DNA of 63,504 bases, counting the filler, from Lenisia limosa (taxonomy: Eukaryota; Protista; Breviatea): the NCBI GenBank assembly GCA_001655205.1. It is 10 parts of 10 records of this genome, joined end to end, with 100 filler letters (N's around TTAATTAATTAA, not from the genome) between each part and the next. Parts side by side here need not be neighbours in the genome. Positions count along the whole stretch, not along the records: positions 27,761 to 47,707 come from LPNZ01010085.1; 9 more parts are not named here. The stretch is one strand, 5' to 3'. The position numbers and the translations under genes are program-made. This document shows, in pieces, positions 27,364 through 49,528 of the stretch (its first letter is position 1; each line of letters begins with the position of its first letter). Below the pieces are notes generated by a model. That model saw nothing but the letters and a program-made list of their open reading frames with translations, searched no databases and was not told where the DNA came from.

Positions 27364-27805
27364 GCCTGAAGGAAGTGATACTAAGCCTCGAAATACACCA
27401 TAAATCAGAAGGAGTGGAGGCAAACAAGAGGATAATGTACATTTTTCATTTTTTCATAGGTCCAATGTGTCTCACTTGAATTGAAGGAATACGTTTTAAA
27501 CGACAGCAGAGACCCCCCCCCCCCACCTTTATTTTGTCTTCTCAGCGAAATTAAACACATATATTCATTTAGGTGAGAAAGGTCATCAGAGAGTGTTGTG
27601 AGTTGTGAGTTCTTTTTTCTCTCTTGATTTCTTGGTCCTCTGAATCCGGTCGATTCTCTGNNNNNNNNNNNNNNNNNNNNNNNNNNNNNNNNNNNNNNNN
27701 NNNNTTAATTAATTAANNNNNNNNNNNNNNNNNNNNNNNNNNNNNNNNNNNNNNNNNNNNTTTCGGTCCCCCAGGTTTATCATATTGACCCCTGTCATTT
27801 TTGTG

Positions 27806-27820
27806 GCCCGCCCGGCACCA
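27806..27820 (+). promoter_or_regulatory. Candidate promoter element GCCCGCCCGGCACCA (second copy at 32208-32222, minus strand)
   Basis: Exact 15-mer about 120 bp upstream of PK and about 155 bp upstream of GLTP, in the same orientation relative to each gene. Confidence 0.5.
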
Positions 27821-27942
27821 CTGTCTGCAGCCCCCCCTTGGTTGCACACAAGCCCACAAGTTGACCGTTGGCTGATCGCAAGCCTGCAAGCTATTACTTT
27901 GTTACAACTTGATCTTCACCTGGTGTCACCCCTTGGAAGAGA

Positions 27943-30900
27943 ATGACAGCTTCTGAGGACTGGATGTTGTCACATGACTCTTTTTCATCAATGACTGCAT
28001 TTTATGTAGGTTAAATGGATTTTGGTCATATTGTTTTAGGGTTCTAGGCCTGTTCATTTCCAGTCAAATCGTTCTCGTACATTTGTTCAGTTGGCCGGGA
28101 CTATGTCTCCAAAAGTCTTCCTGTAAATGTTATCAGGTCAACAGCGTTCAGCTTTGGGTAAGATTAATACAAAATGGAATGACTGTTGTTCGGTTGAACA
28201 TGAGCCATGGGGTGCCTGAAGAGCATATGATTCTAGTGAAAACTTTGCGTGATGCCGAAAAAAAAAGTGGAGTGCCGCTTAGCATAGTTATTGATTTGAA
28301 AGGGCCCGAAATCCGGACTGGAAGAGTCGTTGGAGAATGTGTTTGTTAAATTTTCTTTAAAAACATGATTTTTCCTCCTACAGGTTTCAATTGTCAAGGG
28401 AAGCATTGTTAACTTAACAGTTGATGAGAAATATGCTAAGGTTTGCTTGGCATTTCTAAAAATGGCTTCAACTGCAAAGAATATTTTTGTGGATTTACCT
28501 AGTTTTGCTCAAGCCGTTTCTATTGGACAGGTATCCTCTATTTTTTCACCAGCGTGTTTTTATTGATGATGGACTTCTTGAATTGGAGGTTATTTCAATA
28601 TCAAGGGAAAATGTCATTTGTACTGCTTGTAACTCTTGTGGGTTTTGATAGGGTAATTCATTTCTGTTTGTACCAAAGGAATGATACTGTAGGTGAAATT
28701 TCTTCATTGAAGGGGGTAAATTTGCCTTCCAAGGAGAGTGGAAATGAAAATAGTATTCCGACTTTATTCAAGCATGACGAAGTTGCTCTGCAGTTTGAAT
28801 GTGATTCTTGATTGTTCAGGTTTGGAATGGAAGCTGAAGTTGATCAAGTTTATGTGTCGTTTACACGGTCATCCCATGACATCAGGTTGAGGGGAAATCT
28901 CAGTTGAATCAAGTTTTTGCGTGCATGTGCTAACTGGCTAAACAACTATTTTAAACTAATACCTGATCGGGGGCTATATGGGGGTTATGTGGTGTGAATC
29001 ATCTGTATATGTTCTCTTCACGCTCTACAAAAAGAAGAATCAATGAGTTCAACAAAAAGATTAGACTTACAAAATTTTGGTGAAAAGGAAATTCCAATTT
29101 ACAGCGGAGGTATTTTCTTGTATTTGTATTATATCATCCTGTTTGAAATTTGACATTTTTTTAGAGCGGTGAAAGAGTATTTAAAGGGATCAGCAAACCC
29201 AATTCAAGTAATTGCTAAAATTGAAAACACTGAAGGTTCTTTTTTATGTTCTGATTGTGTAGGACTTACTAATCTTGATACAATTCTTGAAGAGTGTGAT
29301 GGTGTCTTGGTTGCAAGAGGTGATTTAGGTGTTGAAATAGGTTTTTATTTTATTTTCAATATGGTCTTGATAAAGTTATTGCTTTACAACAAATCATTGT
29401 TTCAAGAGCGACTCTTGCTGGAAAAGTGTGAACCCTTTTCTGTTTATGTTGAATTTAGCCTTCAATTGTTGCTACTCATATGCTTGATAGCATGATTAAC
29501 CAACCTCGTCCAACTCGTGCAGAAGTTTCTGATATTACACATACTGTTCTTGATGGCGCTGGAACTCTGCTGTTGACTGGAGAAATTGCCAAAGTAAGAG
29601 ATATTTTTTGAAATTATCTTAGATAGTTATATAATATACTATATCGTATGATTATAGTATATGATATGTATATTGTTTTTAATTGAAGTAAATTCTGAAG
29701 ATGATCCTCAAAAATGATATGAATTAACATTATATGATCAATACTGTAATTTTCAACTTATTCTATCAAGGACAATGTTCATTTTGGCTTGTTTTCACAG
29801 ATAGAGGAAAATTCACAGATATATGGACGCTGTGATATGTCATATGTAATAATACTATTATCATCATTGTTATTGGGCTTTCTTTGTCTTCTTATCTACC
29901 CCAAAAAGGGAAGAGGGGGGGGGATCCAGGATTATTCACCACTTTCGTTTTTCTTTTTATGATCAGAATATGCTCTGTTAATGAGGTAAAGTTATCAAAA
30001 AAAAAAGGAAAATTCAGCGACTCTTAAGAGAGATGTTTTTGGGGATAATTATGGTGAACTCACACTTTTTTTTCCTTATCAGGTAAAGAAAGAAGTATTA
30101 AATTTTTCCTACTCTGGACTCATAAGATTTTGTTGTCACCACTAGTGATATGATCGTTTGACCTACTTTCGAGTCGAAATGACGAATTATGGTACACGAG
30201 GATTAATCCGAGTTTATCAGAGTGTCATTGAGGCCGGTCAATTATCACACGAGTAGATGTGAGGTATCATATCAGTGTGGACAATGGACAATGTGAAAAT
30301 GATCCAAAAAAGTGATAATAGTGCTGATTAGTAGACTTAAATGCAGCTTAGAGAGCTTCTCAGCGGCTTGCGTGGAGAGGAGAGAGTTCATAGTTTCGGA
30401 AGATAGACAAACCCCTGAGGGCCTCATTTAAGTCAGCAGGTCACCAATTAGAGTCAAAAAGAACGCAGAAGAGCCAAAAACAAAAGGAGCAACACAATTG
30501 GATACAAAAAACCTCAAAAAAAAAACTGTGTTTCTGTGGAGCACTTGCTATTTAGAAAAGTTATGATCAAATACTACCAAATTATTGATGAGATATGCCT
30601 TTTATTTTTCAGAAGAACCATAAATAATGGCTCAGTGGTTCTACCCCAATGACCGCTCTGAATAAGACTCAGTTAATATCAGATTTGGCTTCTGACACAT
30701 AATGTCTTTTTTTCGATAATCAATCAATAATTTTTTTTTAAAAAAAAAAGCAATGATCTAATTTTAAACAGGGGAAATATCCACATGAATGTCTTAATAT
30801 ACTTCGTGGAACCGCTGTTGCAGCTGAAGGAATTCTCCCTAGTCACTGCTTTAGCCTGTTACAACAAGCTTCTTTACAATCAGTTTTTATTGTTATTCAA

Positions 30901-31223
30901 CCTAGGATAAACTTGCAACAGTGGTGTTATCTACGATGGATAATTACATTCCTTCTGCAATTGTCACTTTCGACTTAAATGTTGCCGCAACCCTTTCTTC
31001 CAAAGTTTGACAAACCTTTTAACCCTGTTTTTGCTTCCAATGCCAATTTTATTTCAAACCCAAACCCTCCATCAAGCTAGAGCAACCCGGTTGTTTAGAG
31101 GGGTTTTCCCGGTTTGCTGTTTTTATTAACCAGGTCAGTTCGTGCTCAACTGCTGGTGCTATAACTGAATTTAATGAAAAGTATAACTGCAAATTGGATC
31201 AAAATAAAGTCTTAAACATTTAA
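27943..31223 (+). CDS. PK: Pyruvate kinase (complete, about 14 introns, three GT-TG)
   Basis: ICSVG; RLNMSHG; [10 protein letters not shown]; VFIDDG; KGVNLP; AKIENTEG; ARGDLGVEI; [18 protein letters not shown]; [13 protein letters not shown]; RLFRGVFP; stop TAA at 31221-31223. Confidence 0.96.
28441..28464 (+). other. 24-nt GT-TG intron (PK)
   Basis: gtttgcttggcatttctaaaaatg. Removal gives DEKYAK|[11 protein letters not shown], colinear with yeast PK DDKYAKACDDKIMYVDY (recalled). It is in frame and stop-free, so retention cannot be excluded. Confidence 0.75.
29341..29363 (+). other. 23-nt GT-TG intron (PK)
   Basis: gtttttattttattttcaatatg. Removal restores the frame: [28 protein letters not shown]|[11 protein letters not shown], colinear with [39 protein letters not shown]. 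No AG within the segment. Confidence 0.9.
31005..31027 (+). other. 23-nt GT-TG intron (PK)
   Basis: gtttgacaaaccttttaaccctg contains an in-frame TGA. Removal gives SK|[25 protein letters not shown], colinear with [27 protein letters not shown]. The next two downstream AGs give the wrong frame. Confidence 0.9.
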
Positions 31224-32053
31224 GATACATTTACATTAAACACACTTATGTCCAAAGGATCGGGGTCAACATTGTGTTCTTTAAAGAAAGCAATAATTAC
31301 CATCACAACTGATCTTAAGTCAGGAACTTACATTAAACCTGTAAACGGGTGCAAAAATTTCCATCTGTTGGTAAACCTCAGTATCACTTCCCCCTAATTT
31401 CTTTAAAAAAGTCAAGATAAACAAAGAAAAGCAACTTCTTTGTAAGGTAACGTCATGAGGGCAGTTTTAAAGATACCTCTTGACATAAAACCATGATATT
31501 TGGCGAGTGTATCCTGATATGCAGCACTGTTGGTTAAACCATCACCAAACACAACATATTGAATTGGTTACAATACCTAATAATTTCATTGAGGGTGCCT
31601 TCATCCCTGGCCGCAAATCTTAACATAAATGCCAATTTAAACTGAAGAGCTCAAATTTAGAGAATACAGTTAAACCTGTTTAACCAAAGCAGTCCCTCAC
31701 TCCCTGAATTCTTTGTTGAGGACAACTTCTTACAACTTTTTTCTTTTAAAATCAGTCCTTGAAGTGAGAGAGAAGCGCCATTAGCTTGCCACGCATCTTT
31801 GATTTTCATGTAACATAAAATATTAAACCTTAATATTGCCAGCGATATCATTTTTCACAATACTCAAACCTCTTGCTCCAAAAATATCAGTATTACTGGT
31901 AAAAAAAAAACCAAAAATTTTATTCATTTCAGAGCAGGCATCCAGGAAAACAGTCACTTCAATATCTTGGGAGAGGCTGATTTTTTGAAATAAATCAGTA
32001 AGATGAGAGAGATACTCGAAATGCATTGTTAGAGAAATCAAAATTACCTCCAT
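31220..32053 (-). CDS. GLTP: Glycolipid transfer protein (GLTP family), 6-7 introns, four GT-TG
   Basis: Spliced product FLDACSEMNKIFDIFGARGLSIVKNDIAGNIKKIKDAW...EGLLWLNRALQF...NEIISAAYQDTLAKYHGFMSRGIFKTALMTLPYKETFFKEI. All GLTP signature motifs are present (DIxGNI, LWLxR, AY..TLxKYHG, PYK..F). Confidence 0.93.
31413..31435 (-). other. 23-nt GT-TG intron (GLTP)
   Basis: gttgcttttctttgtttatcttg. Removal gives PYKE|TFFKEI (human PYKSDFLKAL). Confidence 0.9.
31652..31675 (-). other. 24-nt GT-TG intron (GLTP)
   Basis: gtttaactgtattctctaaatttg contains an in-frame TAA. Removal gives LWLNR|ALQF (human MWLKRGLRF). The AG two nt further on would frameshift into a stop. Confidence 0.9.
31807..31828 (-). 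other. 22-nt GT-TG intron (GLTP)
   Basis: gtttaatattttatgttacatg. Required to join DIAGNIK to KIKDAW (human DISGNITKIKAVY). No AG inside. Confidence 0.92.
31888..31911 (-). other. 24-nt GT-TG intron (GLTP)
   Basis: gttttttttttaccagtaatactg. Removal gives FDIFGARGLSIVKNDIAGNI, the same length as human FDCLGSPVFTPIKADISGNI (recalled). Using the internal AG at nt 15-16 leads to a stop. Confidence 0.8.
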
Positions 32054-32499
32054 GATAAGATATTTATAGTCTTATTCAAGTTTTCTGAACTGTTTTGGTG
32101 TTTTAGGTTTCGTCAAGGTTTCGTTTGGGTTTCCTCCAAACCAAAATCATGCAAAAGCTGTGCCAGTTTGGTGCCAGTGTTGCCCAAGTGTTTCAGGGCC
32201 ATGATCCTGGTGCCGGGCGGGCGTCGACAATGATCGGGGCACCTCAAAGAGACATGGGGGGTCTATACAACGTTTTTAGAGAGTAAAGAAGCTAGGTCTC
32301 GAAATAAAATTAGTTCACCTTGAAAGGCTCTATTCCACCAAAGGAGCAAAAAGAGATTTACTTCATCATAATTTCTTTTTGGATCTTTATATATATCATA
32401 TGTTGTTTATCCCCCCTTACCCTTAACCTTAGAATTTTCTGTCTCATTTGCAAGAGCATGACATGCTGATTATGTTCTGTTAAATAAATTATAAATTAC

Positions 32500-34080
32500 T
32501 CTTAGTTTCTGTGATGACAAATTCCAGAGTTTTGGGGAGTATATTACAGGACTGATGTCAAGTAAGCTTCTCATTTTAAATGGAGGGAATATCTACATTA
32601 CTTTGAAGGTGGGGAGCGGAGAGGATAAATGTACATAATTATCTTTTTTATATTGATGTTGCGCTTTTTATGTTATTGATACTCTTGTGATATACTCTTG
32701 TGCATTTCAGATAATCTTGCGCTTATTCTTGCGCACAATTCAGTACCAAACATTCCTTTTAAGGTTTGCTGGTACTAAGGATTATTGTTATGCTTTTATT
32801 TTGATTTATTCAATAGTTTGCGGACTTTCGTTCTTTGTTTATTACACTGTACTTAACCCATTAGGATGGGTTCTTTGCTGACGAAACTGCCTTCAGTCCC
32901 GCCTACTTTAAAAGTAAAGGTTTGAATGAATTGTAATTATTACAACCTGTATTTTTTTTTACAAGAGAATTCCTTACAATTCTCTAGGTTTTGGAAGTCG
33001 GCGCCATTATTGAAGGAGTCCCTCAAATTGCTGTCGTCCCTTTGTCTCCCGGAGAGCAAATTGTGTCAATTGAGGAAGAACAGGTAATTACCAAATTAGA
33101 AAACCTCAAGGAAGACAAAATTCGAAACCAAAGATTCTCAACCAAATTTGGTGGAATTGTCGGTCCGAAAGTATGTTAAAAATAGACTTTGCTTTATGAC
33201 CATTTACTCTTTCAGATTTTTTATGGCAAATAAACCAGATGCCAGCTGAATGGTCATTGAGACCAACAGCAATGCAACCTCCTTTGGCGAAAAACGTTTC
33301 AAACCGATCACAGTTCTCAGACAGAGATTGAGGTAGACGTGCCAAATAAAGAAATACTACAACTTTCTTAGCCCAGCAAAGAGAGGCACAAAATACTTCA
33401 TTGCAATTTGAAATACGGCATTATCTCTAGATCGAATTGCGTAGTACACCTCGCTTAAAACAATTAAGCTCAAGGAGGCGCCAAGTCCTTGAACCGCGTT
33501 CCAGCTGTCTGTGGGAGGTAAAGAGACATTTGGTGAACGATATCACTGGGTGGGCTGCTTTGTACTTCGAGTAAACTGTGATTAAAAACAGAAGCATACA
33601 GAAAGAGGTGAGAGACTGGTGACCAATGAAAACAAGAAAGATGGCGTCATTATATTCGAACAGGTTCTTGTTCTTGAAGTTGAACCTTGTTTTCGTAAAC
33701 AAGCAGATTTTTTGAAATAAACCTAAATCAACAAATAAAAACATAACCTTTATTCAAGAAGACGGCTGAGAGTATATGCCAGAGAAAAGGAAAAAGGCCA
33801 GGGACTTGCTAATTGATGAATACAGAAATAGCATAATTATACACAATGACAATATAATATCATACAACTATTTAAAAATTTATGATTCTGATTTTGAGCA
33901 ATTTCAAAAAAAGAAATCCACCATTATACACGGGTGCGAGTTTGAGAGACATTAACCCCGAAGACATTTTGGGCTCCGATCTCAACCTTCAGCGAGCCCG
34001 CATCGCCGACACGGATTGCGAATGCCATGAGGCCAGGCAACTTACTGTACAGGGTGCCAATGACCTGGTTGATACGTTGT
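32500..34080 (+). CDS. Hypothetical spliced gene(s)
   Basis: Exon-like blocks with GT-AG ends (LEVGAIIEGVPQIAVVPLSPGEQIVSIEEEQ; QMPAEWSLRPTAMQPPLAKTFQ; NPPLYTGASLRDINPEDILGSDLNLQRARIAD). No family recognised; boundaries uncertain. Confidence 0.4.
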
Positions 34081-34467
34081 GCCCCTTAAGAATTATATAT
34101 TGTATTGTAGCTTTCCCGCAGAAAGCTGTGTGCACAGAGTTGTGAGCCAAATAATTGGGTAAAATCATATTATTATACTGTAACATTTGATGTTACGTAC
34201 GACAGGGGCCGCAATAAAAATTCTCAGCCTTTTACCAAAATTCTTGTGTGTTTTGTAATGTTTCTTCCCTGCTTTGTTATGTATTATTACCTGTATTGAT
34301 CCATTATTGAAGTGCTACAACTCAACCAAAAAGAGGCAGAATCTGACATACCATTGTACCCGCTATACCTGTGAACCCTATCCACCAAAGTCGCTGTCTT
34401 TCCCTGTTTTTACCCTCAGTATGAATAATAAAATTGGTCAAAAACAAAACAAAGAGAAACCTTCCAC

Positions 34468-34548
34468 TATCACAGACCTATCACAGACCTATCATTACAG
34501 ACCTATCACAAACCTCTCACAGACCTATCAACAACCTATCACTATCTT
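34468..34548. repeat. Minisatellite, ~12-bp unit (ctatcacagac)
   Basis: About 7 degenerate tandem units. Confidence 0.8.
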
Positions 34549-36601
34549 GGTTCAAACAAAACCTGAAGACCTTGACGCATCGTGGGTTAATATTGCGGGA
34601 AAAGGCCGTTATAACGGATGTTCGATCAGATATTGGACTGGAAGCTTTCCAATGCATCCCAAGTGTCTCAAGATGTTGCCGCAAGGCTCAGTAGTAAGCC
34701 AGAGTCAGAGCGGTCTATTTTTCATTTTTCTTGCGCTGGTTGTGTGGAATGAGATTATTATTATTGATGTTTGTTTTTGGTTTCCTGAATGTGGTGAAAT
34801 TCAATTTATTTTCTTATAATCACATGTTGATGTCATTTGTTCAACCCCTTCCTCTGGCCATGTTGTCAAACGGTTCTCTTTCGTAGAATGGCCCATCGTC
34901 AGACAGCCCATCCGTCCGACTGCCGGCTTTGGGGTATGATGCATTTACATAAGAAGATGATAACCATTTCAGAAGAACGCTGCTACAGGCAAACTTGCCC
35001 AATTTTTATTGGGCAAGTTGCTAAACCGCCGGCAATGATCTTTGCCAATGTTAAGTTTAGAACTGGTTATTCTATGCTTTTGAAAGTTAAAGGCATGGTT
35101 CTCTTTGTTGCAATACCGGAGGAAGTCACCTATTTCTTTTGTTGTTGTATCCTCAGCCCTAAGTTCTGCTCCCTGATCAAAGACATATCAAGAAAAAAAA
35201 GGAAGGTATGAAGAAAACACTCATTTGGGACTGTGGTGATCATGTTGTCATTAAACATAATATAAATTTAATAGCATTAAATATTAGCTCCATATGACCA
35301 AACTGCTTATTCAAATATATAAAAAATGTCAGTCATATCTTGATACAGCATAACAATAACCAACATGTTAAAAGTATGAAATTGTCATTCATTTAAGCAC
35401 GCATCATACCGTGGTTGAGTGGATCTGGCTGAAAATCGGCGTAATTTGCGAAACGAAGGAGAAGTCCACAACTTGACGGGAGGGGATGGGTTCAGTGGAG
35501 GGAAGATTGGCTTGGGCAGGAGGGTAACTATATAAGAATAAGCCATATTAGCACCGTTGTGGTTTATAACAATTTACTCATATTACATAAAATGATACAT
35601 GTAGTATATATATCATACATTTTGGCTCATACCATACTCCCCTTCTTTTTATCCTTTCAGTCACTTTTACAACTCTCAGATTTGAGTATTTATGCACTGG
35701 TATGTAAAGCCTATATTCAATGTGTTCAATATTCTTGTCATGAAAATATCCTTTGAAATCAACACAATTTTGAAACAAGGTATGAAAAATACGTAAAGTT
35801 ATCACAAAAGATAAAGTTAGTAAAATGAAACAAAAAAGGGTGAAAAAGGATTTACAATGTCATTTGCACCAGTTATCATTGTTCATACAAATGGAAATTA
35901 GTAATCTGGAAATACAGTTATGGTGAAACGGTCAGAAGAAACTCTTTAATATTGCCAACCGAATGTCAAAGTCTGCACTTTCAGGAACGCGATTGGCATG
36001 ATCGTCAAAGGCATCAAGCCGCCTCATCAACTCACTTGAGTTTTCAACTTCACCTCAGTTGCGAAGATTGTACTAACACAAGGCTTAACTTCGTAAAAGA
36101 CTAAAAATAGAAAAAAAATCCTCACAAAAAGGGGAGTGAACTGGACTAACTAGACTTTTCTAAAATTTTCTACACATTCGAAAAAAAAATACAAAATTAT
36201 TTTTTTGAATTTTTAACTTTATACAAATTAGTTTTGGAGAAAATTTGAATAATGATCAGAAAAAGTGCATTTATGAGTTTACAAAATCTGGGCCCCTTTT
36301 TATGCACTGGGCCCCTATTTATTCCCTGAAATATATAGAGTACTATACTGTATGATATATTTAATAGAGTGTATGAAGGTATACTTTGGAACTATACTAG
36401 TATTTTATGATATGTTAATAAACCAATTGTTTGAAGAGGAGTATTGTTAATATCGTTATGCTTGACACTCTGACCTCTTGTTGCATTCCAAACAACTATG
36501 CTGTTGACTCCCCCCCCCCCCATGGCTTTTTAGGCTTATATCATATAGTAGTATATAATATAGCTATATATATCATATACTATATAGTATAATACATATC
36601 G

Positions 36602-36835
36602 ATGTGGAAGCACGTAGTGGTGGGTATGGCACGGGCTGTACTGCCAGGCTTCATTAGGTGCCCTAGCGGGGCTGGGAAAGGGGAGAACAGCGCTCAGGGA
36701 GTGGGACGTGCCTTCTTAAGGGGAAGAGACCGTGTTTGACAGAAACCTCCGCCAAAACGCCAGCCAAGCTGGAAACACTTTCCGGGGGGCGGCGGTTTGG
36801 GGGTCAACCAAATCGTGACGACGGATCCGGGAAGA
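36602..36835. ncRNA. Candidate structured non-coding RNA (unclassified)
   Basis: GC-rich island in AT-rich intergenic DNA. Pairings: gaagcacgt/acgtgccttc, ggcac/gtgcc, gctg/cagc, ttgac/gtcaa, ccgcc/ggcgg, ccagc/gctgg. No family motif confidently matched. Confidence 0.3.
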
Positions 36836-37111
36836 AACACAGACAAAAAAGAAAAAAACTGATGCGGGTGCGCAATTAAGGTGCGCAATTATCACCGGCC
36901 GTCAAAACTGGTCTAAAACTGGACTTTTATTAGATATGCTGATGTACATATGACTTCAAACAAAAGGAGTAACTGACATACAACTTAGTTTTACTAAGTG
37001 CCTTTAAAACTTGCTAAGTTCTATCACCAAAACATATTGTAACTAGAGTACTTCCTAGTAATTTTTTTTTCTTTTTAAATCCTTTTTAAACGTTTTCTAT
37101 TAACTGTTAGT

Positions 37112-37448
37112 ATGGATTTTGAAGGTTCCAGAGACGAATTAGCTTGCTCATATGCTGCTATGATTCTTGCTGATGAAGGTCTTGATATTGCTGTTTGCCT
37201 CATATTTTTTAACATAGGCTGATAAAATTGAAGCTATTCTTTCTGCTGCTAACATTTCTGTTGAGTCATACTGGCCTGGCATATGGTCTAAAGCTCTTAG
37301 CGGTCAATCATTAGCTGATCTTATATCAAGCGGACCATCTCAGTCCAGCTCTGCTGTAGCTATTTCTACGACTGAGGAGCCTGAGAAGAAGGTAGAATCT
37401 GAGAAGGATGAGTCTGATGACGACATGGGATTCAGCTTGTTTGATTAA
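37112..37448 (+). CDS. RPLP1: 60S acidic ribosomal protein P1
   Basis: ELACSYAAMILADEGLDIA|ADKIEAILSAANISVESYWPGIWSKAL...ESDDDMGFSLFD*. One 25-nt GT-AG intron (37193-37217). Confidence 0.98.
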
Positions 37449-38769
37449 TTTAAGAATGTATTTTCTTTTTGCTTCCGGGTAATTCTGGAGTGAAAATTAG
37501 CACTAATTTTTTTGGAGTGGATTTGGTCTCGCCTACTTGAAAGCCTGAGTAAATTTAGTTATTTTTTGTTTATTTATGCTTAAAAATTATATTCTCAACG
37601 TCTTTAAAAACCTATTAAGCAGCTTGTGGATGCAACCCAATATACTTCACTCTATTTGGAATCTGATTTTTTTAATTTGGTCGACCCGCCGGATCCTATA
37701 CTACCCAAACCCTATTATAATACTTAAAATAGGGAGTTGATGCTGCTAATAAGGATATTAAGGCAACCATGGAGGCAAAATATATACTTCGTATGCGGGC
37801 CTGACTATTCCTGCACCGCCTCCCAATCCAACGAAACAAAGGAAATTCCTTCAATAACAAAGGCGCACTTAAAAAATAGTACATACAACAAGAGATTTTG
37901 CTTGTACGGTTTAGTTTTGAACGATTTCACATTCGGAAGTGGCGCAACTTGAGCCGATCTTGTAAAAAATTTTGCTCAGGAAAAACCACCCACATATTCC
38001 TAGAACGGTGATTAGATTGGGCCTTACAAGAGAAGTGATCTACTGATCCAGCCGTTATTCCTGTCGCGCTGCCTAATATTTAAATTTATTTTGCTTGCTA
38101 CTAATAATTAAATAAAACACTCTGATACACTTGGAATGAACCTTCGTGTTATCTCCGTTATCATTTCGAACCGTAAGTCGGTCAAATGATTATTTCACAA
38201 GTGGATATGGGTCAATTTTTATAAGAAATATCATATGTTCTCTTAATCAGCGAAATTATTTGAACAACCCAATGAATAATTGGTTGAAAATTGTAGTGAA
38301 ACGTAGAATTAAAAGGCTCAACCCATTTGCTCCAAAGAGTAGTTCATCATGGGTTTACCTTTCGATTCCATGTTCTGGAGCATTTCATCTTCCTCTACAA
38401 GAAGAGATACAACCTTCTTTGTAGCCTGGGATACAAGCACTAAAATGGTTTACATCAGCTGTAAAAAGTGAAAAAACGCATAGCAATGTAGACAAGAAAA
38501 AATGATGAAATTATGTTTGGGGACATTAAATCCAACCTACTTTATTGAGACAATGTCCCCAGCCTTGATGATGGCCCCCAATGGGAGGTTGAGTTGAGAA
38601 ACAGAACGAGGGGGGAAGAAAGTTGCTTCTTATAGGCGAGTAAGGTAAGAAGTAGCCAGCCACCATCCAGGAGGTATGTTGAGTGGTGAGCAAACCACCA
38701 CATAAAAACAAACAACTTCTCTTGATTGTTCATCTCTTCCCCTTTTCAGGATATCAAGATCCGGCTCAC

Positions 38770-38880
38770 GTCACCTCTAGTCTTGGCGACCCGAACCGAA
38801 CCGACCCATTTATTCTGTACACCGATGCCTCATCTTTCGTTATTGGTGGTGTTCTCTACAAGTCCAAGAGGAAGGTCCCC
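38770..38880 (+). mobile_element. Ty3/Gypsy-type RNase H-like fragment (degenerate)
   Basis: DPNRTDPFILYTDASSFVIGGVLYKS resembles the LTR-retrotransposon RNase H motif (P D ... PF.L.TDAS...IG.VL). Confidence 0.6.
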
Positions 38881-39020
38881 GCACCGTCCGCTACATGTCA
38901 TCTCTACTCAAGCCTGCTGAGAAAAATTACACTGCATGTTCGCCTTTTCATACTGTGGAGCTTTCAAGATTGCTAGTGACCTTTGTCTTTTGTTTTCAGC
39001 ATTTCAAGCAACCGGACTCA

Positions 39021-39378
39021 TTATGGCTATCACCATTTCCCCATGGCAAGTTGTAAAGCACCTCACCGACCCTGACATCAACTTCACCATCCCCGTCCAA
39101 TACCCTCCCCGCACCACCCTCTACTCAGCCCTCACCACTGACGAAGCCATTGCAGGATACGCCGCTGCCAAGCCCATCGACAACACTGAAGCTGACTGGT
39201 CCGTCATCAAGAAGTATATCGAGAAGATTGACAATGCCAAGCGTGAGGTATTCGTTACCAACTTCAGCAACAACACTCTTCCCTGGTCAACCCGTGTCAT
39301 TGTTGAGCCCCGACCACAAGAATTGACCCCTGAAGAGAATGTCCCGCTGATCTGCCAACGTCTTCAGGCCGCCAACAT
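39021..39378 (+). CDS. Intronless hypothetical ORF (truncated by N gap)
   Basis: MAITISPWQVVKHLTDPDINFTIPVQYPPRTTLYSALTTDEAIAGY... At least 119 uninterrupted codons with strongly C-ending codon usage. Confidence 0.6.
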
Positions 39379-40705
39379 NNNNNNNNNNNNNNNNNNNNNN
39401 NNNNNNNNNNNNNNNNNNNNNNNNNNNNNNNNNNNNNNNNNNNNNNNNNNNNNNNNNNNNNNNNNNNNNNNNNNNNNNNNNTCTCAAAAATCGGTTACTA
39501 ATCCCCATTGATTCACAAGGTTCAAAAAGAAGGCCCTAATCCCACCAAGCAGCCAACTAAGGTATGCTTATTTAAACTGGAAATGTTACTGCCCGACTTT
39601 TTTTTACAGCTAATATAAACATTTTAGGCTCAACCCAAGGCTCGCAAAAAAGGACACTGTTAAAAAGCCAAAAACGGTGTACATTGATGACATTTTTTGA
39701 AAACTATTTTGTTTTGTTATCAAATTTGACTGGCTTAGACTCAACGTGCAAAAAGCGCCTGTTCGGCAAAAAGCCCGCATTGAAACCCGGGCGACAAAGC
39801 GTTGATGGTTATTGTATTATGTTGATTGTTTTCCAGGTATCTATGAAAAAGTATGAGATTTCTGAACAAATATTGAATAAATGGGGGTTTCAATCCAATA
39901 AATGAATTTTCAATACACTGAAGAGATGTGTGAACTGTTAAAAACAATTCCTAAAAAAAGTGATCCGCATTTTGTCCAGTAATCCGCATTTTGACAATAT
40001 GCTCCCGCACATAAAGTGTTACGGTTATGAAAGAGGCCTGTTTTCGTGGTTAATGCGCCATAACTTGGCTTAATATGTATGAATTTCATCCTAATAAACA
40101 GCAAATTACATACTGAAGTCATTTTCAAATGTTTTTTTGAAAAAACCCCGAGCAAATCATCCCCTGCAGTAAAAACCCTCTAGGTTATTAATCTGATTAT
40201 CTATACAATTGAAGAGAAAACAATCAGAGAGGATGAGAAGAGGAGAGCAGTGAAATATGATAGATCACAAAAGCTGCCTTTAAATATTGTCATAGCATTC
40301 ATAATCCATGCAAACTGGGTAGATAACCGGGCACAACGTCCTCTCTAAGATCTAAAGATTTGAGCACAGCTCCAAAATATAGAAATAAATAAGATATCAA
40401 GGTATGGTTCAGAGAAAGTTTTAAAAGGTCTCAGAATTATCGAGATCATATTGAATTGCGAGATAAGGGCAGTCGGAAAAGGAGCCAACGACACAGGGAA
40501 GGCCTAAACACCACACTTCCGATTGCTTATTTCAAGAAAGTGGCTAATAATTCCAATTACACGAGGAGAAGTGGGAAAGAGCAGCCTAGGTACTTCGAAC
40601 TCGCTTCAAACATTTTACATCCAAGCATACCTTCTAAAACTATAACTGTAATACCATTAAGATGTAAAGGCGCCTGCAAAGCGAACAACAAGTTAATAAA
40701 GTAAT

Positions 40706-40826
40706 GACCCGTCTAGGCAGCCCAAGGCCGCCGGCCCACACACGGTAAGCCGGAGAGACGCCTGTCGGGCGTACCGCCGTGACGGACGGCTAGTCAAGGC
40801 TGGCCGTCCGAATCATGGTAGTAGAA
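40706..40826. ncRNA. Candidate structured RNA (multibranch domain plus long hairpin)
   Basis: cccgtctaggc/gcctgtcggg encloses the ccggc/gccgg hairpin. It is followed by a ~20-bp hairpin: taccgccgtga-cggacggctag / ctggccgtccg-aa-tcatggtagta. Confidence 0.45.
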
Positions 40827-41919
40827 TAGTTATATCTGAGGACCTCGACCTGTTGAGTCTTTCTCAGCCTCTCTAGTGTGTGTTGCTATTATTTGTTTAA
40901 TAAAATAATCTCTATAAAATTTAGTTGAGAGGATATTGCAAAGCCTGATTTTTCTTAGTTTTTGATAATTTATGAGTATCCAACCCCGTTAATACATTTA
41001 TTTAGTGATTTCAAGAACATGAACTTTCGAGAAGTGAGAATCAAAATAACATGAAAATGTTGATTTATAATATAAGCCACACTGCCAGTCGTATACTTTA
41101 GTGAACGATTGGACCCAAAAAAGCCCGTGCAGGTCACAGCGTCAATAAGATTTCTTTTGACCCACGCAATCAATTTTTTTTGTCAATCGAGGAGTGGGAG
41201 ATTGTGGATGAAACCTACAAATATACTTAACAGGTCGTTGTCCCCAGATATAATATCTTCTACTACCCCTGTCCGAATCCCAAAAGAGCACAATCCTCGT
41301 CTTCAGCCCATTTTATGTAGAAATTATTGCCCCCGAAGTCCACGTAATCAAATCAGAATTATTCCATTTTCAAAAGGAATGTAAAAAACCGTGGAAGTAT
41401 CATTGTTGTTGTTATGAAGCACTTTTGAAGAGAAATAGGAGAAATAAGTAAATATACAGGAAGAGAATGGGAATGTGATGATTTTTATTAAAGAGCCCAT
41501 ATGCAAACACAGGGAATGTAACACGAAAAATTTAGGGAGTATCAAAGTCAAGATAAGGAGAATACTATTTTGACAGGCGAAATCGGTTATTCTACCATCA
41601 GTTTTATTCCAATTAGCCTAAAGAAACATAATTAGATGTACTTCTACAAGACAAAACATTCTATTCATGAGGCCCGGAAAGACGTGGACTTCATGTTGAC
41701 CTTTCGATCACTCCAAGAAAAACTCTTCGTGCTTCCATGGTGTTCTTGGTGTCTTAGTGTGGGGATTGTAGTATTGGAAAGTGGGATTGTGTGCGTGAAT
41801 TCGTAACTACTCAGTAGCTGATTGTTTTCCCGTTTTCCCCAATAAGTGGCCAAGCTTTAAACTCAGATGAATAATAATAGACTGAACCACAAGAATTGGA
41901 CACAATGGTAAGACAATTC

Positions 41920-42819
41920 CTACACTTTCAAAAAGACATTATTGTTTGAAGAAAGGTACGTTGTTTTGCCACTTTGAGATAATGATTTTGCGATAAATTT
42001 TGCTGCTTCAATACGCCTCAGTAACAACAGAGTACTACCAAATTGAAGAGCATTATTAATAAGTTTAGCTGCACAGGCTTCTCCTAATAAATCAAACAAA
42101 GAATGAACCTTCTGATCTGATCACAATTGCTTCAGTTTCACGTTTATCTTTTTCAACAATGAATTTAGCCCTTTCCGCTTCCTGTTCAGCAACCTGCTTT
42201 GATTCAATTGCATTTGTAAACTCTGCACCAAAAGTCAGATGTGTCTTAAAATAAGGAAATAAAAAAAAACAATAGATACATCATCAACCACAATATGAAA
42301 CTGCCTCAGTCGTTCAACAAGGGTTGAATTAATAGATTCAGAAACCTCTTCACGCTTAGTAATCAATTCAGCAGCCTCATATTGCGCAACTACTTGTTTC
42401 AGTACTTCATTTCCAACTGAAGGCAAAACTCTGTCTTCAAAATCTAAACCATACACCGAGAACAAATCAGACAAAAAGTGAATATCAGGTTTATACAAAA
42501 TCCTTAGTGTCAAATTAACGTTCTGTAAATCTTTTGTCCCAGTTGACGTAGGAAGATTTCTAGGTCTTGTTTTTATATCAATGACAATTGGCTTCTGCAA
42601 CCAAGGCAAAAAAAAATGTGTTCCTTCAGCAAAATTATTAAAAAGAGCAACATATAGCAATTTTGTTTAATCCAGTTGTTCGATTAAACATAATGCACCT
42701 TTCACCAGGGTTTACAAAAATAATATTTTACAATAAAAACCTGTGAAAAAGGAAGAGTGCACAATCGAAGCAGAAAGTCCTGAAAAAAGGGCCAATTTGC
42801 CCAAAAACTGAAGAGACAT
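41920..42819 (-). CDS. PHB1: Prohibitin 1 (4 introns, two GT-TG)
   Basis: [49 protein letters not shown]...[15 protein letters not shown]...[25 protein letters not shown]...DDVSI|[32 protein letters not shown]. Confidence 0.97.
42630..42651 (-). other. 22-nt GT-TG intron (PHB1)
   Basis: gttgctctttttaataattttg contains an in-frame TAA. Removal gives [15 protein letters not shown], the same length as human RFRGVQDIVVGEGTH. Confidence 0.9.
42715..42740 (-). other. 26-nt GT-TG intron (PHB1)
   Basis: gtttttattgtaaaatattatttttg. Removal gives SFFT|[12 protein letters not shown] (human LYNVDAGHRAVIFDR, recalled). The next AG gives a stop-containing frame. Confidence 0.9.
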
Positions 42820-43429
42820 TGCAACCTAAAACCAACTCAAAATGACTGGCTGGTATAGTATCCCTTATTATGTCAAGCTGAGGCCAAAGCTGCCAGATCT
42901 ATTTCTGGTAGTTTCAGCCAGGGGGGGTGACCCCCTTTGTATAGGTACCACATGATATCATATAAAAGAGGTTTATTGACTTTTAAACATAAATATATCG
43001 TGACGGCTTCGACCTGATATTTCATTTTCCATTTCTACGTAACATGCTATGTAATACTTGTACGTATGGAAACTATATCATACTTATGACCTGTGAAAAA
43101 ACGAAATCTGATGTATCCTATCAGATGTCGAGGGACAACATCATAATATATGTGAGAGGATACAAAATTTATACAATATCAGATAGATTTTAATAATATC
43201 ATCTTCTTTGTTAGATGCTGAGGGGGATATCGACTCAATTCCCAATATTCGAGGTTGAGGTTCGTAACTTGTTGAATCAAAAGTAAACGCAACTAAAAAA
43301 TATCAAAGAAAACAGCTAGTAACTTATCAATTCCTCAATTTGTAATAGCGGGCTTGTAATCGGAGAACAAATGTGAGAATCTTGTGATCACACAAGGGCA
43401 CCTACATATATAATGTTGACAGTAGAACA

Positions 43430-44716
43430 GCCTAATTGAACATGAAACCGAGGGAGGGGGTGTAAAGAAGAGAGAAACATTGAAGCGAAGGCAAAAAAAC
43501 AATGAACAGCCATTTGTGACTTGAGTGCATGAGTCTGGGCGTGAAAAACTTCGTTGAAACTTGGTTTTTTGCCCTCTTCTTTTTGGCTTGAGGGGTAGAT
43601 GCCAGTGGGATGTGGTGGTAAATCTTACGGAGGGATGTCACGAAATGCCAGTCAAGGTTGGGGTTCACTCGAAAATAGTATATCCGTAAAAAAGTGTGAA
43701 TGTTTGCAAGGAAAACTCGCTTGGTACAAGAACCACATTTCGAATGCACTAGTGAGTACAGGTTTTCACACTTGTCAGTGGTATGAGCTCGTGGCTCGTG
43801 TGGTTGTCCCTTTGGGTTAAGCCCCTTTCTTGAACTATTAATCAGTTTTGGGATGACTGACAATGACCGTGCGGCGGCAATTAGGTCGAAGGACAGATTT
43901 CGAATCGAATAGTCATTATTCTAAAAAAACGTTAGATTTTAAATGAGAAAGTTTGTATAAGAAAAGACAGCAGCAGGTTACAGTCAGGTAACCTGCAAAC
44001 ACAGGGATTGTGGCCTCGGATCCCTCTAAACGCTGGCCGTGGGACAGGCCGCGCTTGTCGTGGCATCTTAAAAGGTCACTTACAGATTGGGCCCACTGCC
44101 CCTCTCTGTTGTGGCCAAGGGAAAAATTTGGCAATCAAAACACCACTGAAGAATTCTTCTGCCTTTGGTACAGACTGGCGGTCACTACTCCAGTTGTTGG
44201 GTGTCAGTGAAGTTTTACGAGTCGTGGCTACTTCAAAGAATGCCTTGTAGAAGGGTCCATCTTCCTTCATAACTGCAAAACGACACCGCTTAAAAACATG
44301 CATTATATATTGTGTGTTCAAATATATTACCCTGACTCCACAAGAAAGGGTGTTGGAATATGGGGCAACAGGAATAAGCTGGACTGCTCCCCAACTGTCA
44401 ATCAGAGGACGCCCCCGTCATGCAGGCGGATATGAGAGGCATGACAAACTCCTCCAATCCTCTCCACTCCTGGCCAAAAGAAGATAATGAAATCTTAAAA
44501 AAGTAAAAAAATAAAGAGGTTTACAGAAAGAATTGCTTGTTATAAAAAAAAAACCAAAAAGAGCAGAACCCACGCCCACTGAGCAGCCAGTTTCCTTCCA
44601 TTCTGCATAAAGGACACATTTCACAGTAAAACCGCCCAGAATCTTCCTGAGTTCTAAAATAGATAAAACAACTGAAAATAACAAAAAGGGTGACTGAAGG
44701 GGCTGCGGTAGACATC
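43430..44716 (-). CDS. Hypothetical spliced gene
   Basis: Joinable exons WGAVQLIPVAPYSNTLSCGVR|RCRFAVMKEDGPFYKAFFEVATTRK...EEFFS|...EGQWAQSVSDLLRCHDKRG. No family recognised. Confidence 0.5.
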
Positions 44717-45729
44717 GTCTTCCTCAGTGATCAGGAGTTTGTTTTGTTTTGTCATTTTATTCACATCTAGATACCAAGACTATCATTATCGCCACATCGA
44801 GATGCTTCGAGACGATCTGCTTAAACTGGAAGGCTTTGGGGCGTATGCTCGTTCGCGTTGTTTGTGGGTAGACTTTGTTACCAATCAGACATTTTATTGT
44901 TATACTCTTATCGGATTCCAAAGAATAATTGTTCAGCTCACTACTTCAACACCCAAAGCTCAAAACAAACCCTCATTCGCAACCAAGCTCTCATTCATGA
45001 GAATGAAGGGACAATTAACGGTATGCTGTTTCATTCTTTGGATATAACCACATCTTTCCCAGGCTCAATCAAGCTCAACCAGCTGATCAAATCCCTTGCG
45101 GAATCGATATCCGCCCTTGGGTCACTTCCCATCCGGTTGGGGGGTAGGTATTCATATTACATTGGGGGCGGTGTCTAATAGAGTAGAATTGGTGATGTGG
45201 GCTCCATGTTAACTGAGAAGTCCTGCCACAGAAGGCACAGTCGCAGCGTCTACAGCCAATGCCAACAGTGCGGTGACGTATGCTGTCGGGTACATCCGTT
45301 CCCTCTTGGCTGGTAGCGTTCCTCCGCTTGACGATCCGAGCTTCGATGCTGACGCGGATGGAGTTTGCATGGGAATAATCTTCTCTTTTGCGTTTGCTGT
45401 AGCAAATGATACTTCTGCTAGTAATGTTAATGTTTGTGTTCTTCCATTTCAAGAAGCATTGTGTAGAGTTCAATTCCATGTTTAATGCCACAAAAGGTCT
45501 GGCGGGGGTGGAGTAACATTTGAAGAAACGAAAGAATAACATTTGAGTCGATGGGGAAGAGGGTGAGTAGCGGATGTTCTTTATTATTTTTTTTTATCAT
45601 GTTTTTTTTTTGTTATGAATATCACCCCCATCCCAAGATATGCTGCTTGTGGATTCGTTGCAAGAAGTCATTACGAGTAAACAATACAAGTACAGATACG
45701 TAACTAAAATACAATTACTCCTCGGTTTT

Positions 45730-47450
45730 TGGAAACAACCGCTTTCCCTCAAAAATTGGAATTCACTTCCTTATTAGTGAGCGTTCCGAGGAATTGCGTG
45801 GCGTAACACCCTTCCACTCTTTTTCACCAGACTCATTGATCACTAGTCGGTGATTTCCGTTGGGCTTGGTTGGGGTTAGTGTGTAGTCTACAATGGGGGC
45901 ATTCAGGAGCTTGCGGAATGATTGCCGGAGTGATGGCTTCCGCTGAAATGTTAACAATTAACCATCAATATTCACTACAACACGATAGTGTATACCTTAA
46001 CTTGTTGCTATTCTTGAAAAGGACCCACAACTTTTCTAAATGTTTCCACAAGAAGAGGTTCAGTTGCCGAATGGCTTGAGCCCGATACCGGATTTGTTGC
46101 CAAAACATAACCTATTATCATGATATTGTGGAACGTGTAGCTCAAACCACGATCGGAAGTAACCGTTTGGAGTACCGCCTTCAATGAGACTATCACCATT
46201 ATCGTCCAGAGCTGTTAGTGGTGATACCTAGAAAAATAATGAGTAAATAACAACATACACACGAGCCTACCACATCGAATGTCAAGTCGTGACTTGCCCC
46301 TTTCAATGGTTCAGATTCAACAAGCTTCTCAATTGCTTGAAAAGGAATAACCTTCATAGATTCTTCAAACACCACTAACAAATGATAAGGTAAAAACAGC
46401 CAACCATTCACCAAATCTTCTGTAATAAGACTATCAGTGTCAAACAAAATCTCCTTCTGGAAAACAAAGGACTCCACTGCGACATTGGGGACAATTTCGT
46501 CAACCTACAAGTTTAACCAGATTATATCCCAGGAATTTACCTCACAAGTAAGGTTAAAAAATGCCTCAAGAATACATTATAGAATATCATATCATATGTA
46601 TTATAGTTTATAAGTATGACATATGATACATTTTCAAGAACTTAGATAGAAGTTGGATATTTCGACCTCTTCGACATAAATAAAATGAAATTTCTTTCTT
46701 CAAAAGCGTCAAAAAGCAAAACAAACCAGAGCGTGAAAATAATACCTTGAAGATTCAGCAAGTCTTCGTAGCACTGGACTTGGTAAAGGNNNNNNNNNNN
46801 NNNNNNNNNNNNNNNNNNNNNNNNNNNNNNNNNNNNNNNNNNNNNNNNNNNNNNNNNNNNNNNNNNNNNNNNNNNNNNNNNNNNNNNNNNNNNNNNNNNN
46901 NNNNNNNNNNACCTACAGAAATTCCGACAATAGTTGAATGGTTGCGGCATCTGTACGATGGAAGTCGGACAACGAGAGGTCCATGTGCTGAATACACCAG
47001 ATACTCCGTGTACTTGTGTGGAGAAGGAACAATGTCGAAACAGTGGCCACCACCACAGGTAACAGGCACCATAGTTTCTAACGCATAATTGCAGTAGTAG
47101 CTGCGAAGAACCTTTAATGAGCCGCAGGTTGACTTAACAACCGAATGTGGCGTGTCAGATATGGAAAGGGCAAGGTTCTAAGCACAATCAATATTTAAAA
47201 GCAAGAATAAGCGAAGCAAATGAAACATACAGGAACGGGCAAGGGGATGTCAACATGAACCGGATCATTGTTGGTGTCTTCAGCTTCAACACAATCTGCA
47301 ACAATTTCTTCGTCCTGGTGGTGAGAAAGAAAGGAAACCATACTGAACAATCACGCTGTCTCTTTGCGGTTAACTCTCGTTCTATTCCACGCGATTTGCG
47401 TTTATCATCATGAGATCGGGTTGTGTACGGATTTTGCGTATGCACTTCAC
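45730..47450 (-). CDS. Hypothetical spliced gene(s)
   Basis: Exon-like blocks with short GT-AG introns (DEEIVADCVEAEDTNNDPVHVDIPLPVP; MESFVFQKEILFDTDSLITEDLVN; VSPLTALDDNGDSLIEGG). Function unknown. Confidence 0.4.
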
Positions 47451-49528
47451 TCAATTCAAGGCTATTTAGTAAAGAAAAGGAAGAACTATATATGATATGT
47501 AGCTACTACATATACAATATAAATATACATAGTCAGTATATTATACCAGATAAAATATACAACCTATAAAGTAAGTTTTAATACCTCTTCGGGATCATAT
47601 CAGGCAATGCACAGCTTGCAACATGTCGTGCAAAATTCAGAAGTGGACCGACAAATACAGAGGAACAACCAATCTTGGGGCACGCAGCGAGAACAAACGT
47701 CGGATCANNNNNNNNNNNNNNNNNNNNNNNNNNNNNNNNNNNNNNNNNNNNTTAATTAATTAANNNNNNNNNNNNNNNNNNNNNNNNNNNNNNNNNNNNN
47801 NNNNNNNTTAGGGTGTAGAGAGTTGGGGGATTATACAGTATTATGGGCATGTGTTATTATTTTTTATTATTTAATCTTTTTTTTTGGCTGATTTTTTATT
47901 TTCACTCACCGTCAACACTGTCTTTATTTCCCTCCCTCAGCGCACTTTCCGCAGTAGCAGTTCCAGTCGAAAGTCTGCAGGACGCTCTCAACGACTCTCC
48001 TCACCCGTCACTCATACTTGGTTGTGAAAGTGGGGAGGGGGGGGGGGCTAAAACGAANNNNNNNNNNNNNNNNNNNNNNNNNNNNNNNNNNNNNNNNNNN
48101 NNNNNNNNNNNNNNNNNNNNNNNNNNNNNNNNNNNNNNNNNNNNNNNNNNNNNNNNNNNNNNNNNNNNNNNNNTACTACTTATAATGTCCAAACAAAAAA
48201 AAGGGAATTTGCGGAGGGGGTGGCGAGAGGGGGTAATGGTGAGAGAGCTGTATGGGTTTTCTTTACATTTTAATGTCAAGATATTGTCTTTGGAAATCAA
48301 ATAAAAAATCGGTCAAGGCTTATCCCGGTCACTGTATACTGAAGGTACCACCTATAACACATCGTATAAAAACTACAGGAATTTGAAACAGGAATCATTT
48401 ATAATTTGTCGAGAGAGAGGGGGTAAAACGAAGGAAATTGTACCTGTCATCGTGTAGCTATAACTGTAAAGTTTCCACAACGCATTGACCACATAAATTC
48501 CCCCTAATCTACCCTTTAAACAGGTCTCCGCGGTGCAGTCACATCCGTCCTCTTCCTAAGACCCTCCGACGGCTTCCTCCTTCATAGATCGCATTTGGGC
48601 CCCTGTTTGAGTAATGCTGATCCTTGGGGCAAAGCTCTAGTGCCGCTTAACGTGAGATTCGCATGAGGTGTCTAATATTACTAGGGGTTCCACTACGGTC
48701 CCAAAGAAGTCTGAATTTCTCGATAAATCCTCGATAAATATCGATATTTTCAATGCACTAGCTCCCCCCCCCATACTATCAGATGTTGTTCTCCTGGAAG
48801 ACAAATTTGACTCAGGGAAAAATAATAATAGCTTATTTTGTCATTATGATGCCTTTATTCGGTATTTGTTTTATTTTCGGTGTTTACGAATTTAGCACAC
48901 CGCCAATCGCATCAAATCCAGAACTCCTGAGTCTCAGGTATGATGATTCTTCTCTCCCGTGGTGTGTACTCTTATGAGCTACCAGTCTCACCCCCATTTG
49001 TCCTGACCCCCCCTTTATATCTACATAAATTATATTNNNNNNNNNNNNNNNNNNNNNNNNNNNNNNNNNNNNNNNNNNNNTTAATTAATTAANNNNNNNN
49101 NNNNNNNNNNNNNNNNNNNNNNNNNNNNNNNNNNNNACTGAAGAGCATACTAAGGTTGGGAGAGGGGGAAAGGAGGGGTTTACACGAAGGAGGTGTATAA
49201 ACATTGCATTTAAGGGAGACGGGAGTCTGTAATGAGGCCTGTACTTAAATATGGCCTATCAAGTAGTAAGCCATCAAACAAAAATTGAACACTTATCAGT
49301 AGTGACACACAGAAACAGACCATTCCTCACCTTCCATTGAATCATTTCTCACCCTAAACATCCTCTCATAATCATCTCTCTCACCCAAATAATGTTTCTT
49401 ACATGAAACACCCAGCTCATCAAATTCCTCACCCCTCAACATCTCATCATGATATCTCACTTGTCAGCCAACAGAGTTTATTTTGGGCTTTTTTGCGTCG
49501 TAAATTTTCTAATTTTACCTTCCGTCAG

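Follow-up and report, generated by a model that had tools for sequence, protein, structure and literature searches.

How can a gene be read when its coding sequence is interrupted repeatedly by segments of 22-26 nt that begin with GT, as introns do, but end with TG? The AG at the 3' end of introns is among the most conserved signals in eukaryotic gene expression. The question is raised by DNA of the Lenisia limosa assembly GCA_001655205.1, presented as a window of 63,504 nt (the whole stretch analysed, in which ten parts are joined), and specifically by the piece at positions 27761-47707 (LPNZ01010085.1; 19.9 kb, ~38% G+C), from which all intron counts given below are taken. The first-pass annotation described nine such segments in the genes for pyruvate kinase (PK), glycolipid transfer protein (GLTP) and prohibitin-1 (PHB). 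All nine are present as described, with GT at the start, TG at the end and lengths of 22-26 nt, and a tenth was found by comparing RNA with DNA. Very probably these segments are genuine U2-type spliceosomal introns, ultra-short (21-26 nt), whose 3' dinucleotide is UG rather than AG. The three genes and their segments, with coordinates and ends read from the sequence, are as follows.

28091-31223, plus strand: PK, with 14 introns, three of them GT..TG; exons match Pfam PF00224/PF02887 and TIGR01064
28441-28464, plus strand: PK, GT..TG segment of 24 nt
29341-29363, plus strand: PK, GT..TG segment of 23 nt
31005-31027, plus strand: PK, GT..TG segment of 23 nt
31220-32053, minus strand: GLTP, with six introns, four of them GT..TG
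31888-31911, minus strand: GLTP, GT..TG segment of 24 nt
31807-31828, minus strand: GLTP, GT..TG segment of 22 nt
31652-31675, minus strand: GLTP, GT..TG segment of 24 nt
31413-31435, minus strand: GLTP, GT..TG segment of 23 nt
41920-42819, minus strand: PHB, with four introns, two GT..TG and two GT-AG
42715-42740, minus strand: PHB, GT..TG segment of 26 nt
42630-42651, minus strand: PHB, GT..TG segment of 22 nt

PK, GLTP and PHB can be read only from mRNAs that lack the segments. As the first-pass annotation had stated, six of the nine lengths are not multiples of three and 31652-31675 contains an in-frame TAA, which makes its retention impossible; the in-frame, stop-free segments are 28441-28464 and 31888-31911. 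Sliding the boundaries of the nine segments yields only GG..AT or TT..GG as equivalents and never AG. Once the nine segments are removed along with the ordinary GT-AG introns, PK forms an open frame of 443 aa (its N-terminus and 5' end were not found) and GLTP a complete open frame of 229 aa, whose exon pieces match Pfam PF08718 at profile positions 1-36, 37-81 and 111-139. The spliced PHB model (266 aa) has 51% identity to Palaemon prohibitin 1 over 262 residues, with a single 1-residue gap that lies far from the junctions.

The placing of the boundaries was examined in two ways. In a deletion scan, 0-75 nt were removed around a junction in all possible ways and each resulting protein was scored with a hidden Markov model (HMM) of homologues, built from 112 prohibitins or from 78 bacterial pyruvate kinases. 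In addition, all GT..AG removals of 12-90 nt that leave the whole open reading frame (ORF) open were listed as alternatives. For PHB, the scan recovers both GT-AG control introns exactly, and both GT..TG segments likewise obtain the top score. For PK, it returns the correct length for seven GT-AG controls and 23 nt as the best length for 29341-29363, with these boundaries in the top tie; with the bacterial HMM it does not resolve 28441-28464 or the exact length at 31005-31027.

These data bear directly on the alternative that survives best, namely that these are GT-AG introns of the ordinary kind whose boundaries lie elsewhere and that the proteins differ from their homologues by small insertions or deletions. 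At five sites this alternative fares poorly. At 29341-29363 in PK, the match to the Pfam PK profile runs up to position 254 in the exon before the segment and resumes at 276/277 with the second exon after it; under the TG model the 21 intervening profile positions (255-275) are filled by exactly 21 residues. Retention here breaks the ORF, and the best GT-AG alternative (35 nt, 29341-29375) scores 10 bits lower and drops 4 residues where the profile length otherwise fits exactly. At 31005-31027 no GT-AG alternative keeps the ORF. The stretch 31005-31060 is devoid of AG, the score falls by 17.6 bits with retention, and the downstream exon matches PK_C. The exons that flank 31807-31828 in GLTP meet at profile positions 36|37, reading through encounters a stop, and the only GT-AG alternatives (67-79 nt) lose at least 15 conserved residues. 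In PHB, 42715-42740 is a phase 1 segment in a Val codon whose retention breaks the ORF and whose sole GT-AG alternative, of 17 nt, is 18.6 bits lower. The exons around 42630-42651, a segment that shifts the frame, are placed exactly one column apart in a MAFFT alignment, which corresponds to the split codon; here the sole GT-AG alternative (82 nt) is 35 bits lower. Judged by homology, at least these five boundaries fall firmly on GT..TG, with no acceptable GT-AG alternative.

At the other four sites there are points that weigh against TG introns, since GT-AG removals exist that keep the frame, as they also do at 29341-29363. For 28441-28464 in PK, in-frame alternatives of 21, 33 and 39 nt are available, one of which scores the same as the TG model with the bacterial HMM. 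The stretch from E2 to E5 has 41 residues under the TG model, 49 with retention and 36 with the 39-nt alternative (28441-28479); the same span occupies 40 positions in TIGR01064 and 43 in Pfam, lengths that favour TG, and we regard this site as equivocal. In GLTP, 31888-31911 has in-frame GT-AG alternatives of 21-42 nt and could also be retained, in which case 45 residues would lie on 36 profile positions, an insertion of ~8 residues. An 18-nt alternative to 31652-31675 (31650-31667) is in frame and adds 2 residues; it is shorter than every intron found in the piece. For 31413-31435, retention breaks the ORF, and in-frame alternatives of 29 nt and 35 nt (31401-31435) lose 2 or 4 residues; the TG version keeps a TFLKKL stretch that we take to match human GLTP. 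On these comparisons the four segments would still fit best as TG introns, a softer assignment than for the other five. The first-pass annotation had stated that every removal restores exact-length agreement with homologue motifs; homology gives exact boundaries for at least five of the nine, and the four others have alternatives or might be retained. Taken over all sites, and with the RNA-supported intron at 33343-33363 (see below) unreadable as GT-AG, other boundaries for ordinary introns are an unlikely explanation.

In a homology-free count of the GT..NN segments that connect open frames, background dominated and none of the dinucleotides was prominent. A phmmer search of the PDB with single GLTP exons gave no matches.

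The position of one segment is conserved. A prohibitin gene from a different organism has a GT-AG intron in the same codon and phase (1) as 42715-42740, the sole TG case compared; that organism is A+T-rich, and its GT-AG introns have an ordinary length of 90-160 nt. The intron in the other gene follows the first base of the Val codon in an N-V-D motif. The pattern is that expected of an old spliceosomal intron whose acceptor has changed. One of the canonical PHB introns, 42245-42270 (GT-AG), also has a counterpart in the same gene.

Two sequencing runs contain the sequence: X1, which is DNA-like, and X2, of polyA RNA. At 95% likeness four X2 contigs could be placed, and these confirm five GT-AG joints, in PK and in a small plus-strand gene. 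One of them also reveals the tenth GT..TG intron, which was absent from the first-pass list. The features concerned are the following.

32866-33233, plus strand: coding sequence of a small gene; intron 3 is 33171-33215 and the last coding exon 33216-33233
33204-33790, minus strand: region of a gene with its stop at 33204-33206, carrying the RNA-supported TG intron
33343-33363, minus strand: tenth GT..TG intron, 21 nt, seen as a difference between RNA and DNA

A single X2 contig (record 12; 473 nt, depth 41.6) lacks exactly 33343-33363. The DNA contigs keep this segment, and the deletion is carried by 0 of a depth of 123. One GT..TG intron is therefore removed at the RNA level while present in the DNA. 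On the minus strand it reads GTTGTAGTATTTCTTTATTTG, that is GT..TG, with TT..GG as its only sliding equivalent, and its removal takes out a TAG in frame and leaves stretches of 59 and 45 codons connected in one open frame. The contig also bears plus-strand exons of the convergent gene, so that we infer the minus-strand assignment from frame and motif, a point that has to be set against this example. On the plus strand the segment would be a CA..AC intron in a 3' untranslated region (UTR), for which we know of no precedent. A Pfam search of the gene at 33204-33790 identified no family, and more than one structure fits its upstream exons.

This locus is compact. Intron 3 of the small plus-strand gene contains the stop of the minus-strand gene, and the last coding exon of the plus-strand gene is antisense to coding sequence of its partner; one RNA contig merges both transcripts. 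Further upstream on the minus strand, another 22-nt GT..TG segment (33544-33565) could link the exon upstream of 33343-33363 to a 62-codon frame; GT-AG options of 19 and 34 nt within 33480-33600 compete with it. The X1 DNA contigs differ from the scaffold over 33010-33547 by eight substitutions and by insertions of 6 and 2 nt, consistent with heterozygosity or with repeat copies.

Could the gene copies instead be broken, or the segments be kept in the mRNA, with pseudogenes, retention or translational frame rescue accounting for what is seen? In support of this, the two in-frame segments are free of stops and translatable, and at 95% likeness no X2 contig was placed across any of the nine introns of the original list, probably because several short gaps bring a contig below this cut-off. 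Seven of the nine, however, break the frame or carry a stop, and after their removal the genes are complete and conserved from end to end. All nine start with GT(T) and have the size and composition of neighbouring true introns. The RNA can also be examined through the shares of sampled 31-mers that occur in X2, which are 0.46 for the GLTP region and 0.44 for 28100-32100. If all introns were spliced, 0.585 and 0.47 would be expected; with the TG segments retained, the expectations would be 0.86 and 0.56. The observed shares lie far below those for retention and, fitting the all-spliced case better, are supportive of TG introns, with the qualification that incomplete transcript coverage could lower the shares and so confounds the argument. 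Retention or gene decay, in our view, is quite improbable.

Additional searches for transcripts were negative. A GLTP exon searched against two protein libraries returned only the window's own ORF, and searches with a PHB exon and a PHB profile for transcript-derived proteins of the organism found only foreign prohibitins. An exact look-up of the PHB ORF gave none on record, and a metagenome scan for the PHB junction, spliced or unspliced, found nothing.

Within PK, an RNA joint confirms the 279-nt GT-AG intron 28886-29164, and RNA also supports a second donor for it: in one contig 28886-29107 is kept and 29107 is joined to 29163, with removal of a 55-nt GT..AG segment. This is alternative splicing or partial retention.

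A sequencing or assembly error, or U-to-A editing before splicing, would leave the true acceptor as AG. The doubt that A had been misassembled as T is met at the seven PK and GLTP sites, where the TG letters recur in two further sources and no variant is reported: Logan DNA contigs of X1, with 0 differences over 27900-29702 and 29800-32279 at a depth of ~40x, and an independent ENA metaSPAdes contig (L083), which has identical letters. This comparison covers those seven sites and not the two in PHB, and the reads behind the scaffold may also be those from which the X1 contigs and L083 were built. An identical letter is found at ten independent acceptors. As for editing, we know of no U-to-A RNA editing in animals. 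An error or editing would be a barely credible source of these acceptors.

The scaffold and L083 agree at 99.9% over 27766-36591. Beyond this point they share no sequence (L083 1-3847), and one assembly or the other has a misjoin or runs through a repeat there. The presence of all three genes on one contig therefore holds for the scaffold only, since the match to L083 ends before PHB. An assembly gap at 39379-39481, between RPLP1 and PHB, is crossed by no gene model, so continuity there is irrelevant to the finding.

The remaining possibility is that the segments are cut from somatic DNA rather than from RNA, as in ciliate internal eliminated sequences (IESs) or dicyemid DNA elimination. Their sizes resemble those of the shortest ciliate IESs. 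DNA elimination with formation of circles is reported for dicyemids, and circular contigs have been described (Zverkov 2019, PMC6543705), but the DNA contigs retain all covered segments, with zero depth for the 21-nt deletion, and the GT starts, the GT-AG introns as neighbours and the one conserved intron position leave DNA elimination with hardly any probability.

Preferring TG-ended introns on these grounds, we can describe their anatomy alongside that of the canonical introns in the same piece, which include one in a further conserved gene.

37112-37448, plus strand: RPLP1, with a 25-nt GT-AG intron at 37193-37217 that serves as canonical comparator

The piece contains 29 introns. A TG end is found in 10 of the 21 introns of <=28 nt and in none of the eight longer ones (Fisher p = 0.027). 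The suggestion that TG acceptors make up about half of this size class is thereby borne out, and the nine GT-AG introns of <=28 nt that had been counted in PK, GLTP, PHB and RPLP1 become 11 on recount. TG and AG mini-introns are alike: both have 50-55% T, begin with GT followed mostly by T, and have an excess of A at -5 to -7 relative to the 3' end. Counted from the donor, the last A is at 17-23 nt, or at 28 nt in the single 33-nt intron. A GTT start occurs in 10/10 TG introns and 12/19 AG introns, a difference that is not significant (p = 0.06); the donors of the TG introns are GTTTG, GTTTT, GTTGC and GTTTA. All ten TG-ended segments thus have the 5' GT of U2-type introns, and none has the 3' AG. 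Assignment to the U12 type was rejected, the /RTATCCTT donor and the TCCTTAAC branch motif being absent from these sequences of 21-26 nt.

Most TG sites have no AG within 6-12 nt downstream. Where one occurs, at +2 of 31652-31675 and at +6 of 42630-42651, its use breaks the frame. Conversely, the 27-nt GT-AG introns 28793-28819 and 29236-29262 contain TG dinucleotides at 22-24 nt that are not used. A rule by which the first AG or TG at least 20 nt from the donor is used fails at these two introns and at 29426-29458. The first-pass annotation had proposed that the acceptor is chosen by distance; as a pure rule this is contradicted by the skipped TGs and by the AG 2 nt past 31652-31675.

A less rigid mechanism can be envisaged. 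The A-rich patch 5-7 nt before the 3' end is the probable branch site, ~17-21 nt from the 5' end, and its distance from the donor would be minimal and almost constant. With so little length available, the spliceosome may set the 3' end mainly by geometry, a few nt past the branch, and the first suitable NG a few bases downstream of the branch would be ligated. G(-1) would still be required to pair with G(+1), whereas U might be tolerated beside A at -2, where it could contact the branch adenosine. AG would be preferred, and would win when within reach. The early reading of AG by U2AF35 is presumably dispensable or altered.

In summary, the claim that TG-acceptor introns are real and frequent in the piece stands on homology, on a conserved position, on the RNA joint of the tenth intron and on the 31-mer shares, with four cases less firm than had been stated. 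The TG-acceptor reading has good support for at least six introns, five on the strength of exact homology and one from RNA, and is likely for the remaining ones. Such introns may also be abundant beyond the 19.9-kb piece. That the major spliceosome of this organism takes UG about as readily as AG in 21-26-nt introns throughout the genome is a broader claim, towards which we lean with some reserve; it would imply that position -2 is no longer read and that the geometry of the minimal intron sets the acceptor.

Several other features were observed in and around these genes. The stops of PK (TAA, 31221-31223) and GLTP (TAA, 31222-31220) overlap in a common TTAA at 31220-31223, so that the 3' UTRs must run antisense through each other's last exons. 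Between GLTP exons 4 and 5 the intron can be drawn in two ways: removal of 26 nt as GT-AG (31527-31552) is in frame and gives 34 residues for 28 profile positions, and a 38-nt GT..GG removal from 31576 fits the length better (30 residues). The 1178-nt PK intron contains a repeat of ~200 nt (29673-29869) with a summed DNA depth of ~18,000 versus ~40 elsewhere, a very high copy number. Beside the assembly gap, 38683-38973 is a degenerate Ty3/gypsy-type RNase H fragment (Pfam RT_RNaseH_2, E = 8e-6). The remainder of the piece consists of repeats and retroelement debris, and Rfam and tRNA scans of it found no RNA genes.

If UG acceptors are indeed used in this way, they provide a natural experiment on how the second step of splicing and U2AF35 read position -2. 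There are also practical consequences. Pipelines of the AUGUSTUS, BRAKER and TopHat type reject TG junctions, so that genes with even one TG intron will be truncated, split or frame-shifted. In the present piece the damage to annotation would concern three of the four conserved genes (PK, GLTP and PHB, but not RPLP1). Gene sets for this lineage built with GT-AG introns only would be systematically broken, and claims of extreme gene loss or low gene number for dicyemid-like parasites with ultra-short introns would need to be re-checked.

A search of one literature library turned up no description of TG acceptors for dicyemids, for myxozoans or for other lineages whose introns are very short. 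Ogino reportedly compared cDNA with genomic DNA in 2010 for ~40 D. japonicum genes. Among animals, introns of <30 nt are said to occur only in dicyemids and in myxobolid myxozoans (PMC13644364). The mini-introns of both groups resemble those described here in being ~21-27 nt long and many per gene, with reduced motifs and conserved positions (PMC13644364, PMC6736024, PMC6543705, PMC2222250); a weak A patch upstream of the 3' end and a small, repeat-rich genome are also common to these systems, and the ~38% G+C found here would likewise fit a dicyemid (PMC6736024). They differ in that their 3' end is given as AG, as determined with AUGUSTUS, TopHat and BRAKER (canonical only), whereas about half the introns here end in TG. 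The annotation of D. japonicum was made with tools restricted to GT-AG (PMC13644364, PMC6736024), and the 2026 survey of animal mini-introns gives its 3' end only as 'AG' (PMC13644364). Two further points from these groups do not favour TG introns: the 5' logo of D. japonicum is 'GTa' (PMC13644364) versus GTT in 22/29 introns here, and neither a dicyemid study of cDNA versus genome that covered 16 introns (PMC2222250) nor that of Ogino is known to mention TG ends, which would be surprising if the DNA came from a dicyemid.

More distant systems share individual properties with these introns. Human TG acceptors stand beside a normal AG, in introns of ordinary length. As alternative 3' splice sites they share with the present cases a U2-type context, the retained G(-1) and ligation at UG (Szafranski et al. 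2007, PMC2374985). They are, however, rare (36 genes) and alternative (PMC2374985), whereas TG is here the sole productive acceptor and accounts for ~45% of the sample. A minor alternative TG of the human type beside a dominant AG does not describe the present introns, in which the nearby AGs break the frame. Human short introns that are independent of U2AF and dependent on SPF45 (PMC8363638) offer a precedent for bypassing the U2AF heterodimer with truncated pyrimidine tracts, a bypass that would remove the early AG check; these introns are ~56 nt long and still end in AG. The GA/GG donors of Eurytemora affinis (PMC5714493) are alike in being a non-canonical dinucleotide, at ~12%, that compromised gene models until it was recognised, but they concern the donor side of introns of normal length and not the acceptor. 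In Fritillaria borealis, non-canonical introns occur throughout the lineage and the U2AF subunits are duplicated and divergent (PMC13326754). There too a large share of introns escapes the 3' AG rule, implying altered recognition of the 3' splice site, but both intron ends are non-canonical and 95% escape GT/AG; the introns described here always keep the 5' GT and depart from the rule at position -2 alone.

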